NCBI RefSeq assembly: GCF_000006765.1
Contig: NC_002516.2
Length of the DNA stretch: 64,000 bases
Strand: one strand, 5' to 3'
Source of the DNA: Pseudomonas aeruginosa PAO1
GTDB taxonomy: Bacteria; Pseudomonadota; Gammaproteobacteria; Pseudomonadales; Pseudomonadaceae
Part shown: positions 3,091-53,794 of the stretch, piece after piece
How positions within the stretch are numbered: the stretch's first letter is position 1
Layout of the letters: each line of letters starts with the position of its first letter
Notes under the pieces: generated by a model
The model's database searches: none
Seen by the model: only the letters and a program-made list of their open reading frames with translations
What the model was told of the DNA's origin: nothing
Made by a program: the position numbers and the translations under genes

Positions 3091-3469
3091 GGAGGGGCCT
3101 GTGCAAGCAGGCCTTCCTCTCGCTGTCATCAACCCGTGTGGCCTCTCGCCAGGGCTCGGGTGCATGTTTCAGCGAGGTTGCCCCGAGGGCGCGCCATGGC
3201 CGTCGCGGGCCGGCCGCCGGGAGGCGCTCGCGGAACCTCGCAGGTCCCGCGAAAAGGCCCGGCGCAGAGCCTGCGAACACCCGAGGAAAGGCTGCGAAAA
3301 CAATTCGATGCTCCCGAGATTTTTTCCCCGATCTGTCACCGGAACTTGCGAGTTTTATCCCCAGCGGCCCCTTCGACCGGCTAGGGATGCAAAGCCCGGC
3401 AAGCACGGCGCCGCCTCATGCAAGACGACTTCCTCAACGTACCAACACCACGATGAAAGGAGATTCTTC

Positions 3470-38525: not shown

Positions 38526-38569
38526 TCCCCGCTCCGGCGGCTCGCCGCCGGACTCCACGGAGAGTTTCC

Positions 38570-41310: not shown

Positions 41311-41337
41311 TGGAGCGGGCGAAGGGAATCGAACCCT
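41311..41337. repeat. attL (duplicate of the tRNA-Gly 3' end)
   Basis: TGGAGCGGGCGAAGGGAATCGAACCCT identical to 53721-53747. Confidence 0.97.
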
Positions 41338-41430
41338 TTAAAATAGGGTTTTGAAGCGTTCCTATACATTCTAATGCCACTGCCTTCGATTTTTAGGCGT
41401 CTTACTCCGTAGCTCTTCGTGTCATTGATT

Positions 41431-41447
41431 TCGACACATTTTCGACA
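41431..41447 (+). promoter_or_regulatory. Candidate integrase arm-type sites (left arm)
   Basis: TCGACA direct repeat with 11-bp period; the same pair occurs at 53637-53653. Confidence 0.55.
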
Positions 41448-41462
41448 GGTCCTGCATGAGGA

Positions 41463-41491
41463 TTGCATTTTTATCCTGGTTGCTTTATGAT
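41463..41491 (+). promoter_or_regulatory. Sigma70 promoter of the ncRNA-RT-effector operon
   Basis: TTGCAT-17bp-TATGAT; predicted +1 at about A41498. Confidence 0.8.
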
Positions 41492-41497
41492 CACCTT

Positions 41498-41570
41498 ATG
41501 CCAAGACTAGGAGCAGCTCCAGTCACAAATGGCCTCTACAGTCGTCTAGTCTCCTGTTTACGTTTGTGTT
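41498..41570 (+). ncRNA. phrD: PhrD sRNA / candidate retron msr
   Basis: Starts at the predicted +1; closed by AGACTAG(41504-10)/CTAGTCT(41546-52) stem with internal GGAG-CAG-CTCC hairpin; PhrD identity and 3' end recalled from the PAO1 annotation. Confidence 0.65.
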
Positions 41571-41623
41571 GCCCTTTAGGCTCGGCTCGGGCTCGATGCC
41601 TAAAGGGCTTCACAAATAGTAAA
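41557..41623 (+). other. Long msd-like hairpin
   Basis: TTTAC-G-TTTGTG-TT-GCCCTTTAGGC ... GCCTAAAGGGC-TT-CACAAA-TA-GTAAA (22 paired positions); no U-tract on either strand. Confidence 0.75.
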
Positions 41624-41624
41624 T

Positions 41625-41750
41625 CCCCGCTCCCCGCTCCCCGCTCCCCGCTCCCCGCTCCCCGCTCCCCGCTCCCCGCTCCCCGCTCCCCGCTCCCCGC
41701 TCCCCGCTCCCCGCTCCCCGCTCCCCGCTCCCCGCTCCCCGCTCCCCGCT
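41625..41750. repeat. Perfect heptamer tandem repeat (CCCCGCT)18
   Basis: 126 nt, 18 exact units plus CCC; complement (AGCGGGG)18. Confidence 0.98.
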
Positions 41751-41968
41751 CCCTCGATCTTTTACTCATCCCCTCTGCTCTGGGTCTACCGTTTTTCTCT
41801 ACTGGGACTATCACGCCTTTGCGTCCTTCTCCCTTCCATTGTACCTTCTATGCGCTGTGCTACGAGCTTTATGGTGAGTCTTGTTCGCACCAATGTACAT
41901 TTATTGCTGTTGGCTATCGACTGGGTTCCAATATACGATGGAACCATAGATTTCTCGGCAGATGAGAT

Positions 41969-42925
41969 ATGAAGAAGAGACCTTTAGAAGATCTTTTTTT
42001 TGCGATGTACAGAGGGAAGCAGAGTTTCGAACACTTTGCCAATTGCTCTGTCGAAGGTTTATATGAGCCGGTGATGGTGAATGGACGACTCGTATATAAA
42101 ACCGATAAGGATCTGCGTGCGTATCATCGGTTTCTAAATAAATTCTTGTTTGAAAGGCTTCCTGTTGTTGATGATGTTGTGTTTTCTTATCGTAAAGGTG
42201 TTAACGCCGTAGATGCTGTCGAAAAGCATGCAGGTAGTAAGTTTTATTTTCAAACTGATTTAAGGGATTTCTTCAGTAGTCTAACTAAGTCTGATGTTAG
42301 AAGAACTCTGGAATGGGCGAAAGATGTTTGTGTTATTTCAGACTTAGATGTTTGGGTTGAGAGAATTCTGAAGTTGGTTACTATTGGTGATTCTTTGCCG
42401 ATGGGGTTTTCGACTTCCCCTGCAATTAGCAATGCATGCTTATACTCTCTGGATGGGATATTAAAGACGCATTGTTTAAGTAATGGTGTTATATATACTC
42501 GTTATGCAGATGATCTGATTTTTTCCTCGTCGAACAAGCAGGCGCTTGATCCTTTGTTTGGGGTCGTGTGTCGTACCCTCCAATCTGAGTTTTCAGGGCG
42601 GATGGGAATAAATTCACAGAAGACAAAGTACCTAAGAAAGGGGGGGAAAATTAAGCTGCTGGGGCTTAATGTTCTTCCTAATGGAAGAGTTACTGTGGAT
42701 ATGCGGCATAAAAAAGAAATAGAGGTTCGTCTTTTTTATTACGTAAAAGACAGAGCTAGGTTTTTGAAGATCATGGGCGAGGTGGATGATGAAAAAGCTA
42801 TTAAGAAATTCTCTGGTTTAATAAACTACGTAAATACTGTTGATCCGGCTTATCTTGATAAGCTTCGCAAGAAGTATGGCTTAACGATTGTTGATATGTT
42901 TATTCATAAATCACCGAAGCTCTAG
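41969..42925 (+). CDS. Retron-type reverse transcriptase, 318 aa
   Basis: FSYRKG, TDLRDFFSSL, LPMGFSTSPAISN, YTRYADDLIFS, INSQKT, KLLGLNV; no maturase, endonuclease or fused domains. Confidence 0.92.
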   Translation: MKKRPLEDLFFAMYRGKQSFEHFANCSVEGLYEPVMVNGRLVYKTDKDLRAYHRFLNKFLFERLPVVDDVVFSYRKGVNAVDAVEKHAGSKFYFQTDLRDFFSSLTKSDVRRTLEWAKDVCVISDLDVWVERILKLVTIGDSLPMGFSTSPAISNACLYSLDGILKTHCLSNGVIYTRYADDLIFSSSNKQALDPLFGVVCRTLQSEFSGRMGINSQKTKYLRKGGKIKLLGLNVLPNGRVTVDMRHKKEIEVRLFYYVKDRARFLKIMGEVDDEKAIKKFSGLINYVNTVDPAYLDKLRKKYGLTIVDMFIHKSPKL

Positions 42926-42927
42926 GT

Positions 42928-44253
42928 ATGAATTTTCAGATAGTAATAAATAATATCCAACATATTGGTTACGCTGAGCTTGATGTTGATTTAAATGCTA
43001 GTGGAATTATCTGTATAGTCGGGAAGAATGGAGTAGGAAAGACTACTCTAATTAAGGCTATTTTAAATTTAAAGTCTGCCGACACATTTTCTAGAACCGC
43101 CTCGCCTGGTATTTTTAAGGCTAATAGCTCAATGCGCTGTACCTATGGAGAGAACTCATATGAATTCTCTTTTGATTCAGATATAAATGATCTAAATAGC
43201 CGATCCCCTATTCCTGAAGAGTTAAAGTCTGTCATAGACGTTGAGTTACCTATGCCCTTTGGGCAGCGATTTAATAACTATCAAAATATTATGAGCGCGG
43301 ATATGGATATAAGAACCGCGTTGATATTGGGTGAGTACGAGGTACCCGTAGAGCTGATTAGCTTCTTAAGTGATATTTATAAGACCAATAAATTTAATGG
43401 ATTGGTAGAGGTCTCTGCAAAGGGGGGAAGTTACTATTGTATCCCTTTAGATGATGATCGATATGTTCGCGAAGATCACCTCAGTTCTGGAGAATTTTTT
43501 TTAATTAGTTTGTATAGGAAGATTAAGGGGCGTAGTAAGTTTATTGTCATTGATGAAATTGATATTTCTCTAGATGCTGCGGCGCAGGCCCATTTAATTG
43601 GCTGGCTGCGGCGCTTTTGTACAACGGAACAGGTAAAGGTTGTTTTTACTACCCACTCGCTAGCATTGATGAGGACATTAAAAGACGGTGAGTTGTTCTA
43701 TATGGAAGAAAGTGAAGGGAAAGTTAGTGTAATTCCTTCGTCATATAATTATATTAAAAGTGTTTTGTTTGGGTTTAAAGGGTGGGATAGATATATTCTG
43801 ACAGAGGATGCGATGTTGAAGTCTTTGTTGGAGTATGTTTTGGCTAACTATTGTTCTGGTCTTTTTTTTTCTTATCAGATTATCCATGTCGGTGGCGGGA
43901 GTAATGTGGTTGATCTGATGCGCCAAAATTCCACCGAAGGGTTTTTCTCGACGCCCGAAAATGTCATTTCGGTGCTAGATGGGGACCAAGCGGAGTATCG
44001 GTATGCTAGACGGCCCAATGTTTATTGCATTCCATTCTTGAGCGTTGAGAAAGCAATTTTTGCAGAGTACAAGGCCGGAAGATTTTTGCCGGAATTGGCG
44101 CCTGATCCTCGATTTGATACGCCCAAGAATTTTTGTTCGGCAATAGGTCGCGACCGACATGCAACTGAAGCGGATATAATTAAGTATCTTTGTGATAGTT
44201 ATCCAACGGAAGTGCGTAGATTTGCGCAAACCCTTAGTGACTTCCTTAGTTGA
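42928..44253 (+). CDS. ABC-type ATPase fused to a TOPRIM domain (OLD-like retron effector)
   Basis: GKNGVGKTT, LSSGE, FIVIDEID, TTHS; then ILTED, HVGGGSNV, VLDGD (TOPRIM E...DxD) and SVEKAI; 2 nt after the RT stop. Confidence 0.85.
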   Translation: MNFQIVINNIQHIGYAELDVDLNASGIICIVGKNGVGKTTLIKAILNLKSADTFSRTASPGIFKANSSMRCTYGENSYEFSFDSDINDLNSRSPIPEELKSVIDVELPMPFGQRFNNYQNIMSADMDIRTALILGEYEVPVELISFLSDIYKTNKFNGLVEVSAKGGSYYCIPLDDDRYVREDHLSSGEFFLISLYRKIKGRSKFIVIDEIDISLDAAAQAHLIGWLRRFCTTEQVKVVFTTHSLALMRTLKDGELFYMEESEGKVSVIPSSYNYIKSVLFGFKGWDRYILTEDAMLKSLLEYVLANYCSGLFFSYQIIHVGGGSNVVDLMRQNSTEGFFSTPENVISVLDGDQAEYRYARRPNVYCIPFLSVEKAIFAEYKAGRFLPELAPDPRFDTPKNFCSAIGRDRHATEADIIKYLCDSYPTEVRRFAQTLSDFLS

Positions 44254-44541
44254 TGGCATATATTCTCGGGGCAGCATGTGTTTGTCGCAGCAATCGAACC
44301 CAATTTTCTACTTACGCCTAGAATGCGGAACTAATTTCTCAGTGCTGACCTGTGAGAGGTGATTGAGGGGTAAGGCGGGAGTCATCGCAATTCTCATGTT
44401 TTCTCGGAGTTTTTGGGGGGGGGCTTGACCAAGGAAGTTAAGGACAATCGTCGTCTATGAGATTACCGTATCCTTGTCAGCTTCATTTCTTGCCTTCCAT
44501 CCGTAGGGCATACCATCGCAATGCTACTTTTCTAGTGATCG

Positions 44542-47369: not shown

Positions 47370-48632
47370 GTGTGGGGTCTTACGATGAAGTTTGCGAGCC
47401 TGATTCTGATGCTTCTCTTTGCCACGGTGGCGAGGGCTGAGGATTACTACTGGAAAATTCAGTCACTGCCTGAACGCTTTTCTTCGCCCTCGGCAGCTTG
47501 CGCGGCGTGGGCCAAAGCCACGGGACGCCCTGGGGAGTTCACCTTCACCGGGTCTATGAAAGCCCGTGACCAGACCTCGTTTTGGTGCGAGTTCACGAAC
47601 AACGAAACCGGCAAGACTGCTGCCGGGTATGGTCCTGCCGGACGCTATGGCGATAGCTGTCCCGAGGGGACGGAATACGATAAGGCGACCGGGGTTTGTA
47701 AGTCGCCTCCGCAAGAATGCAAGGAAGGCGAACTGTTCCCGGCCAAAGGCCCGGACTCTCCCGTGGTTACCTCGGGAGGCCGTAACTATGTCGGTGACGG
47801 CGGCGCCCCGACCGCCTGCTATCAAAGCTGTGAGTATGGCGGCAATCCCAGCCCGGCCAGTTGCTATCTGGTCAAAGGCTCCACCACGACCGGCTTCTGC
47901 AATTACATCCTCAAGGGCACCGGACAGAATTGCGGTGCCGATTCCTACACCTTCTCCCAGACCGGCGATTCGCTGAACCCGCCCGACACTCCGAACACCG
48001 ATCCTTCCGACCCGAACGACCCCGGCTGCCCGCCCGGCTGGTCGTGGTCGGGAACTACCTGCGTCAAGGCCCCGACCGATCCCACGGATCCAACCGACCC
48101 GACCACGCCGGGCAGTGACGGCGGCGGCGATGGCAATGGCGGTGGAAACAATAACGGCGGCGGCAATGACGGCGGCACCGGCAATGGCGGCGACGGCAGC
48201 GGGGGAGGGGACGGCAACGGCGGGGGCGATGGTAGCGGCGACGGTGACGGCAGCGGCACGGGCGGCGATGGCAACGGCACCTGCGACCCGGCGAAAGAGA
48301 ACTGCTCCACCGGCCCCGAAGGCCCCGGCGGCGAACTCAAGGAGCCCACGCCCGGCACCTGGGATGACGCCATCGCCACCTGGGAAAAGAAGGTCGAGGA
48401 CGCCAAGCAAGAACTCAAGACCAAGGTGAAGGCCAACGTCGATCAGATGAAGGGCGCCTTCGACCTCAACCTGGCGGAAGGCGGCGGGCAACTGCCCTGC
48501 GAGTCCATGACCATTTGGGGCAAGTCCTACTCCCTCTGTATCTCCGACTACGCCGGCCAACTCTCCAGCCTGCGCGTGGCGCTGCTGCTGATGGCCGCGC
48601 TGATCGCCGCCCTCATTCTGCTGAAGGACTGA
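47370..48632 (+). CDS. coaA: Adsorption protein pIII
   Basis: Signal peptide, Cys-rich domains, PTDPTDP and GGDGNGGG linkers, C-terminal TM; start could be ATG 47385. Confidence 0.92.
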   Translation: MWGLTMKFASLILMLLFATVARAEDYYWKIQSLPERFSSPSAACAAWAKATGRPGEFTFTGSMKARDQTSFWCEFTNNETGKTAAGYGPAGRYGDSCPEGTEYDKATGVCKSPPQECKEGELFPAKGPDSPVVTSGGRNYVGDGGAPTACYQSCEYGGNPSPASCYLVKGSTTTGFCNYILKGTGQNCGADSYTFSQTGDSLNPPDTPNTDPSDPNDPGCPPGWSWSGTTCVKAPTDPTDPTDPTTPGSDGGGDGNGGGNNNGGGNDGGTGNGGDGSGGGDGNGGGDGSGDGDGSGTGGDGNGTCDPAKENCSTGPEGPGGELKEPTPGTWDDAIATWEKKVEDAKQELKTKVKANVDQMKGAFDLNLAEGGGQLPCESMTIWGKSYSLCISDYAGQLSSLRVALLLMAALIAALILLKD

Positions 48633-53720: not shown

Positions 53721-53747
53721 TGGAGCGGGCGAAGGGAATCGAACCCT
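53721..53747. repeat. attR
   Basis: 27-bp repeat identical to 41311-41337; comprises the tRNA T-arm and acceptor 3' end. Confidence 0.97.
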
Positions 53748-53794
53748 CGTCATGAGCTTGGGAAGCTCAGGTAATGCCATTATACGACGCCCGC
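53721..53794 (-). tRNA. tRNA-Gly(CCC)
   Basis: GCGGGCG...TGAGC-TTCCCAA-GCTCA...GGTTCGATTCC...CGCCCGC-TCCA; 74 nt with encoded CCA. Confidence 0.97.

Follow-up and report, generated by a model that had tools for sequence, protein, structure and literature searches.

The (CCCCGCT)18 array at positions 41625-41750 of the window (the whole 64-kb stretch of Pseudomonas aeruginosa PAO1 DNA analysed here) is a true variable-number tandem repeat (VNTR) in the leader of a type I-B1 retron, and it is best explained as an expanded version of a C-rich, G-poor element that follows the msd hairpin in the long-spacer retrons of this branch. Its anatomy is, in our judgement, very probably that of a VNTR in a spacer that does not serve as template. 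With regard to its function we are more tentative, and we propose, with a probability of about 0.4, that this slippage-prone microsatellite in an untranslated spacer acts as a Rho-loading attenuator whose copy number might serve as a tuning knob. What is new in this picture is the recurrent, C-rich and repeat-prone spacer in the type I-B1 retron family.

The array within its prophage and retron cassette

The att repeats at 41311-41337 and 53721-53747 enclose 12,437 bp, and by its size and its tRNA-Gly site this element is a Pf4-type filamentous prophage. The features of the prophage edges and of the cassette are the following.

41311-41337, no strand assigned: attL, the left prophage edge, where 27 bp of the tRNA-Gly 3' end stand as a direct repeat, identical to 53721-53747.
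41463-41491, plus strand: ncRNA (phrD) promoter, with TTGCAT at 41463-41468, a 17-nt spacer and TATGAT at 41486-41491, read by eye; inferred transcription start at about 41498.
41498-41623, plus strand: retron ncRNA module, the 5' part of which is the sRNA PhrD (PA0714.1); helix P1 at 41500-41503/41530-41533, SL1 at 41505-41524 and a long hairpin at 41557-41623.
41625-41750, plus strand: (CCCCGCT)18 array, a VNTR whose RNA is predicted to be unstructured and whose complement, (AGCGGGG)18, is prone to form G-quadruplexes (G4).
41751-41850, plus strand: remaining pyrimidine-rich, G-poor spacer, delimited by composition per 40 nt; the relatives L008 and L010 are alike in character here and different in sequence.
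41900-41968, plus strand: second conserved block 5' of the RT start, kept in the window, L008 and L010, with differing sequence between the two blocks.
41969-42925, plus strand: retron reverse transcriptase (RT) PA0715 ('PfrT'), 318 aa, intact (Pfam RVT_1, 1e-17; PADLOC RT_I-B, 3.7e-140, full length).
42928-44253, plus strand: ATPase-Toprim (OLD-like) effector PA0716, 441 aa, intact (PADLOC ATPase-Toprim_I-B, 1.3e-197, full length; Pfam AAA_21 and AAA_15).
53721-53794, minus strand: tRNA-Gly(ccc) with attR, the right prophage edge (ARAGORN, Rfam, att repeat).

The cassette is a type I-B retron of the I-B1 branch in the Mestre classification, a branch that had no experimentally validated member in 2020 (PMC7736814). 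Residues 1-316 of the RT align with positions 1-315 of the 316 positions of the PADLOC model RT_I-B (464.7 bits), and the effector gene, which begins 3 nt past the RT stop, encodes a protein that scores 655.4 bits against ATPase-Toprim_I-B. A sequence-only reading of the window, made before this analysis, had already placed the array in the leader of a retron cassette, and these scores bear it out. Defence-finder tools list 'Retron I-B' for PAO1 as well (PMC11878078). Since the RT and effector genes (41969-44253) have a G+C content of 39-40%, as compared with 63% in the phage core (45000-52000) and in the host flank, the cassette appears to be a recent foreign insert; the array nonetheless has a G+C content of 86%.

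All 18 heptamers of the array are perfect. Tandem Repeats Finder delimits it at 41624-41753 (period 7, 18.6 copies, 100% matches, score 260), and the runner-up in the window reaches a score of 107 and is imperfect, so that, as had been claimed from the letters, the array is the sole case of a long and perfect microsatellite in the 64 kb. It starts 2 nt past the 3' base of the long hairpin at 41623 and is situated between the ncRNA promoter and the RT start codon at 41969. Over its 126 nt it contains 71% C and 14% G, and considering both strands it is the 78-nt stretch of the window with the most extreme excess of C over G (56 C and 11 G; (C-G)/78 of 0.58 vs 0.38 for the next best, z = 6). This extremity and the perfection of the array are far beyond chance. 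The RNA of the array is unpaired in the centroid fold, with a predicted free energy of -9 kcal/mol for 126 nt. The quadruplex potential of the complementary strand is real: its 18 G4 tracts with 3-nt loops amount to four non-overlapping motifs on the minus strand, and these are the only (G>=4)x4 quadruplex motifs in the window. The earlier description of a C-rich transcript with a G4-prone complement thus holds. Among INPHARED phage records the sole match to the query was partial (147 nt) and lay outside the array, and no mention of the heptamer or of a VNTR near PA0715 was found in the literature searched, to which Guo et al. (Cell Rep 2024;43:114883) did not belong.

Upstream of the array, three ncRNA helices are supported by covariation. 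The module common to the relatives consists of P1, a near-invariant hairpin of the form GACUAGGAG-NNN-CUCCAGUC, a linker and a long hairpin closed by UUAC/GUAA. In 36 diverse relatives, 88% of the cells are paired vs 32-41% when the partners are slid, 14 pairs have changed on both sides, and none of 500 shuffles matches the observed score. The conserved structure stops at the base of the long hairpin (67 nt, 41557-41623), which is presumably the msd template and whose base would then mark the 3' limit of the template. The search of the leader against Rfam gave no family match at gathering score or at E<=10. The ncRNA promoter was not called by a simple promoter scan; both of its hexamers are kept in L008 and L010 with a variable spacer between them, and a -10-like box lies 7-10 nt 5' of the first helix in every relative inspected. 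The second conserved block, at 41900-41968, may hold a separate RT promoter (TTGGCT ... TATACG, read by eye) together with translation signals.

The sRNA PhrD has been described as an RNA of 72-74 nt (PMC3272035, PMC6344545). Counted from the start at about 41498, such an RNA ends within the 5' arm of the long hairpin, and by analogy with Retron Ec78 this length might be that of the remnant expected once the reverse-transcribed hairpin template has been removed. The much-cited PhrD coincides with the 5' part of the retron ncRNA, which bears on the reading of the PhrD phenotypes and of the role reported for the RT in Pf4 genome reduction.

Several smaller details of the leader may be recorded here. 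A 5-nt inverted repeat (41459-41463 with 41473-41477) straddles the -35 and is found at the same place, with other letters, in L008 and L010; it could be the operator of a dimeric regulator or a hairpin in single-stranded phage DNA. Two copies of TTCGACA, separated by 4 nt (41430-41436 and 41441-41447), precede the -35 by about 20 nt. L008 has the pair unchanged; L010 has an unaltered first copy, and an extra T in the gap shifts its second; possibly the pair is a regulator binding site. The loop of the long hairpin (41579-41597) holds about three copies of GGCTCG, and the corresponding loops of L008 and L010 are shorter and non-repetitive, which indicates that slippage has acted inside the presumed template too. 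In the 18-copy allele, an ORF from the 5'-terminal AUG extends to 4 nt before the RT start; a leader peptide or phase-variable translational coupling was rejected because this ORF is not conserved and stops within the ncRNA in L008, L010 and other relatives.

Copy number and spacer composition among relatives

The unit number was compared across assemblies, and the length variability suspected by the sequence-only reading proved to be real. Assemblies with the same cassette carry 2, 3, 6, 7, 9, 14, 15, 17 or 18 copies between the same flanks, some of these numbers being taken from short-read assemblies that are broken or possibly collapsed at the array. Chromosomes of 6.26 Mb with an identical RT have 18, 18, 15, 17 and 7 copies, four of them sharing the locus coordinate, and in two further chromosomes with an identical RT the array is masked with N. 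An IMG/VR prophage has 14 copies. Two other RT variants of P. aeruginosa have 7, 3, 6, 7 and 9 copies and 2, 18 and 9 copies, respectively, and the sister species Pseudomonas sp. PDM19 (RT 88% identical) has 4, while a metagenomic relative (RT 78% identical) shows other C/T-rich 9-mers in place of the array. Some alleles have no more than 2-3 copies, so the locus can do without a long array.

The array also has a practical consequence for genome assembly. The RT was found only on contigs of less than 5 kb in 2,206 of 2,514 index blocks, and several short-read contigs (L232, L233, L240) begin within the array; the array therefore breaks short-read assemblies, which explains why, in the majority of P. 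aeruginosa genomes assembled from short reads, the cassette lands on contigs of 2-5 kb, and for the same reason the longest alleles can be trusted from long reads only. A second Pf copy probably breaks the assemblies on the other side. With its variable copy number the array is usable as a strain and subline marker. One chromosome with 17 copies (CP050054; L005, positions 1-2230) has genes for a phage integrase and a ParE-type toxin immediately 5' of its retron leader, an arrangement that suggests tandem prophage copies or joined prophage ends.

Relatives of the retron were gathered by protein search, exact-protein look-ups, a genome scan and two motif scans. The RT protein search gave 447 relatives at E<=1e-20, and the family set comprises 120 distinct ncRNA sequences for which the RT start could be identified. 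Across these 120 distinct relatives the RT starts between 8 and 398 nt past the hairpin base (median 128), and in the compact relatives the RT ORF begins only 8-30 nt past it. Because its length varies over this range, the spacer is dispensable for the core mechanism.

Where the spacer is long, its composition changes along its length. In the 46 relatives whose spacer is 150 nt or longer, the 50 nt that follow the hairpin contain on average 35% C and 13% G, and close to the RT these values have become 19% and 21%, respectively. C exceeds G in the first 60 nt past the hairpin in 44 of the 46 loci. The mean skew there is 0.22, and over the final 60 nt of the spacer it is -0.02 (paired p = 3e-8); with the array-bearing loci removed the proximal skew is 0.20 (p = 6e-7); both probabilities are optimistic, since the loci are related and yet were treated as independent.

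Tandem arrays are concentrated in the same place, and those that begin within 50 nt of the hairpin are found in eight lineages. In the 9.8 kb of proximal spacer 8 arrays were counted, where the same 706 kb of loci would lead one to expect 0.81 (P = 2e-6, again optimistic because related loci were counted as independent), which corresponds to a density of 0.81 per kb of proximal spacer vs 0.09 per kb elsewhere in the same loci, or about nine times as much. The units in relatives include CTCCAG (14.5 copies, in P. azerbaijanoccidentalis), CACTCTCAG (15.7 copies, in a Shewanella locus adjoining a P2-type replication gene), CCGCCTCTA (3.2 copies) and CTACAG (4 copies). They are mutually unrelated, and the arrays have therefore arisen independently. 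All recurrent arrays are C-rich and G-poor on the sense strand, whereas a G4-prone complement is found for the Pf4 unit only, the complements (CTGGAG)n and (CTGAGAGTG)n having no G-tracts. The sequence-only reading had named a general lack of the array in homologous cassettes as one point that would count against a role for it; most relatives do lack (CCCCGCT)n, but the same position repeatedly carries other arrays. In the locus L027, the CTCCAG unit equals the 3' arm of SL1. The reading that the units are decoys mimicking msr motifs was rejected, with 1.59 shared 6-mers vs 1.50 in shuffled sequences over the 46 loci.

Proposed attenuation and competing explanations

Retrons need much ncRNA and msDNA and little of the RT and of the toxic effector. 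We propose that transcripts starting at the strong ncRNA promoter would continue for about 126 nt as unstructured and untranslated RNA, 71% of it C, that this C-rich RNA would be an ideal loading site for Rho, and that most transcripts would end before or early in the RT gene, leaving the cell with much ncRNA and little RT and toxic effector. A weak promoter of the RT's own might contribute in addition. Replication slippage, by adding or removing 7-nt units, would shift the strength of this insulator and provide a tuning that is both heritable and reversible. If this is true, a C-rich insulator, found in most long-spacer I-B1 retrons and assembled again and again through the expansion of microsatellites, would explain the retron ratio in a simple way that is open to test, and the strength of defence would be a quickly mutable trait.

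The proposal draws on the property that the family shares, namely C-rich, G-poor, predicted unpaired and untranslated RNA 3' of a small-RNA promoter and without an intrinsic terminator; a simple scan of the leader called no such terminator. The features by which Rho loads at rut sites are those of C-rich, G-poor, unstructured and untranslated RNA. The array supplies a C-rich, G-poor stretch of the length looked for (about 80 nt or more), and its RNA is predicted to be both unstructured and untranslated, the leader ORF not being conserved in relatives. Nevertheless, Rho loading, attenuation and a dependence of expression on copy number are read here from sequence features, and we regard the Rho mechanism taken alone as possible rather than probable. 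Among the roles suggested by the sequence-only reading, a VNTR that tunes the expression of the cassette fits best; the variation in copy number is observed, while the tuning itself is something we infer.

The chief competitor of the attenuator is a neutral microsatellite, grown in a tolerant spacer where the adjacent stable hairpin promotes slippage, and with no effect on retron or phage. We consider it rather unlikely, even if much is in keeping with it: the copy number runs from 2 to 18 with an identical RT and effector, compact relatives do without any spacer, the array units differ among lineages, and the hairpin loop has undergone an expansion of its own, (GGCTCG)3, which is absent from L008 and L010. 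However, slippage leaves unexplained why 44 of 46 long spacers have more C than G exactly at the hairpin-proximal end, in array-free loci as well, and why C is abundant and G scarce on the transcribed sense strand of each of the recurrent arrays.

The same bias of the sense strand weighs against a roadblock at the level of DNA, in which the G-rich template strand would fold into up to four tandem G-quadruplexes and stall RNA polymerase or the replication fork, so attenuating expression or destabilising the locus. The window's only four-tetrad G4 motifs, four in number and with 3-nt loops, do lie on the minus strand of the array, and with G4 terms the predicted stability of this strand is -130 kcal/mol vs -25 kcal/mol without them (RNA parameters). 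Yet the arrays of relatives have no G-tracts in their complements, and what the family shares is an excess of C over G in the RNA, not a G4. Furthermore, filamentous phages package the gene-sense strand in the course of their replication; assuming that this also holds for Pf4, the packaged strand is the C-rich one and the G-rich strand is never a free single strand. A roadblock of this kind appears improbable to us.

Little weight is attached to the idea that the retron itself makes the site directly 3' of the msd hairpin a birthplace of C-rich microsatellites throughout the family, either because the RT would, at least on occasion, start in the repeat and yield msDNA with a variable G-rich 5' tail (in Pf4 a quadruplex-forming one), or because slipped cDNA would re-anneal with the locus it came from and write expansions into the genome. 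In that case the retron would itself have produced, in the array, a heritable record and a regulator of its activity.

An array-containing msDNA is harder still to credit. The sequence-only reading had put forward an unusually long RT-DNA whose G4 fold includes the array, with the RT starting downstream of it and a variable G-rich quadruplex 5' extension acting on the effector. The canonical a2 has not been placed, and the template start is thus not formally fixed; moreover, a weak pair of 13 nt with 77% complementarity (41504-41516 with 41775-41787) flanks the ncRNA and the array. As an a1/a2 candidate this pair was rejected, since it is absent from the closest relative, L008. Canonical terminal a1/a2 repeats and a branching G were not found in the type I-B1 relatives searched, where the search returned only the 5'-terminal helix P1, which closes the first hairpin and is followed by an invariant G, and in a family-wide search for a distal complement to the ncRNA 5' end the best duplex measured 6.00 nt vs 6.14 nt in shuffles. 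The array probably lies outside the reverse-transcribed template, because the conserved structure ends 2 nt before it, because compact relatives, with their RT ORF 8-30 nt past the hairpin, have no room for a template beyond it, because no sequence further downstream complements the RNA 5' end beyond chance, and because the copy number varies ninefold with identical proteins, which would be hard to square with a DNA that scaffolds the effector. The unrelated units in relatives likewise speak against an array-containing msDNA.

Finally, the array had been suspected of seeding the large deletions in the Pf4 accessory region. The deletion variants described in the literature have lost part of phrD together with the RT, the ATPase and the repressor, and hence the array, and their formation reportedly depends on both phrD and the RT (PMC12328805, PMC12395586, PMC11307329). 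It is nonetheless very unlikely that the array triggers these deletions, as the left part that is kept has been described as 'the remaining part of phrD', driven by the phrD promoter, with the junction inside phrD and upstream of the array (PMC11307329, PMC12395586), as a direct-repeat search of the leader against the region upstream of the excisionase gene found none involving the array, and as arrays also occur in non-filamentous contexts, e.g., in L070, which adjoins a P2-type replication gene. The array is a cargo of the published deletions, not their visible edge.

Comparison with known systems and further repeats

In common with type I-B retrons such as Retron-Eco8 (I-B2; PMC7736814), the cassette has an RT followed by an ATPase-Toprim protein and a structured ncRNA directly upstream on the same strand, and it is a prophage-borne defence cassette. 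Unlike Retron-Eco8, it belongs to I-B1, and its 441-aa effector matches PDLC02914, not the 623-position PDLC02915; unlike the known type I-B retrons, no terminal a1/a2 pair was found here, and a long, variable, C-rich VNTR spacer separates ncRNA and RT. Retron Ec78 (type I-A, of the same RT clade 1) has small msr hairpins, one long template stem-loop and removal by RNase H (PMC12819146). The order of small hairpin(s) and then a long stem-loop is the same in our module, and the 72-74 nt of PhrD would fit the remnant. However, the inverted repeats that flank the Ec78 RNA are 8 nt long, and there are four stem-loops within its 144 nt, whereas the module described here has P1, one small and one long hairpin, and no flanking repeats were found.

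As in the contingency loci of Haemophilus, Neisseria and Campylobacter, a perfect array of short units occupies a regulatory position and differs in copy number among near-identical strains. In contrast to these loci, there is no on/off frame logic, since the sole ORF that runs through the array is not conserved, the array lies after and not within the promoter, and it belongs to a phage defence cassette and not to a surface-antigen gene. Likewise, the array resembles Rho-dependent attenuators in its 71% C and 14% G over 126 nt, predicted to be unpaired and untranslated and without an intrinsic terminator, whereas natural rut sites are not normally perfect microsatellites. A theme of RT-associated repeats is shared with DRT2 and DRT9, which produce concatemers and homopolymers, respectively, by repetition created during the reverse transcription of a non-repetitive template; the repeat described here, in contrast, is already present in the genome, probably beyond the limits of the template.

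Some further observations concern repeats and RNAs elsewhere in the window. Eight nucleotides of the array recur as their reverse complement, GGAGCGGG, in the att core, the tRNA-Gly acceptor end (41312-41319 and 53722-53729); the chance expectation of such an 8-nt match in the 27-bp att core is about 0.01, for a match that was noticed post hoc. Partial array units of 10-12 nt occur in host DNA at 38526, 40994 and 53895. A nine-G run at 44415-44423, between the effector gene and the repressor-side ORF, is a further slippage-prone tract. The Rfam family RF01681 (Pseudomonas sRNA P4) has a full-length hit of 262 bits at 3255-3469 on the minus strand, which is unrelated to the array. Within the 420-aa ORF of the phage core (47370-48632), an imperfect GGCGGCGA-type repeat with periods of 6 to 36 spans 48186-48278 and may encode a glycine-rich stretch.
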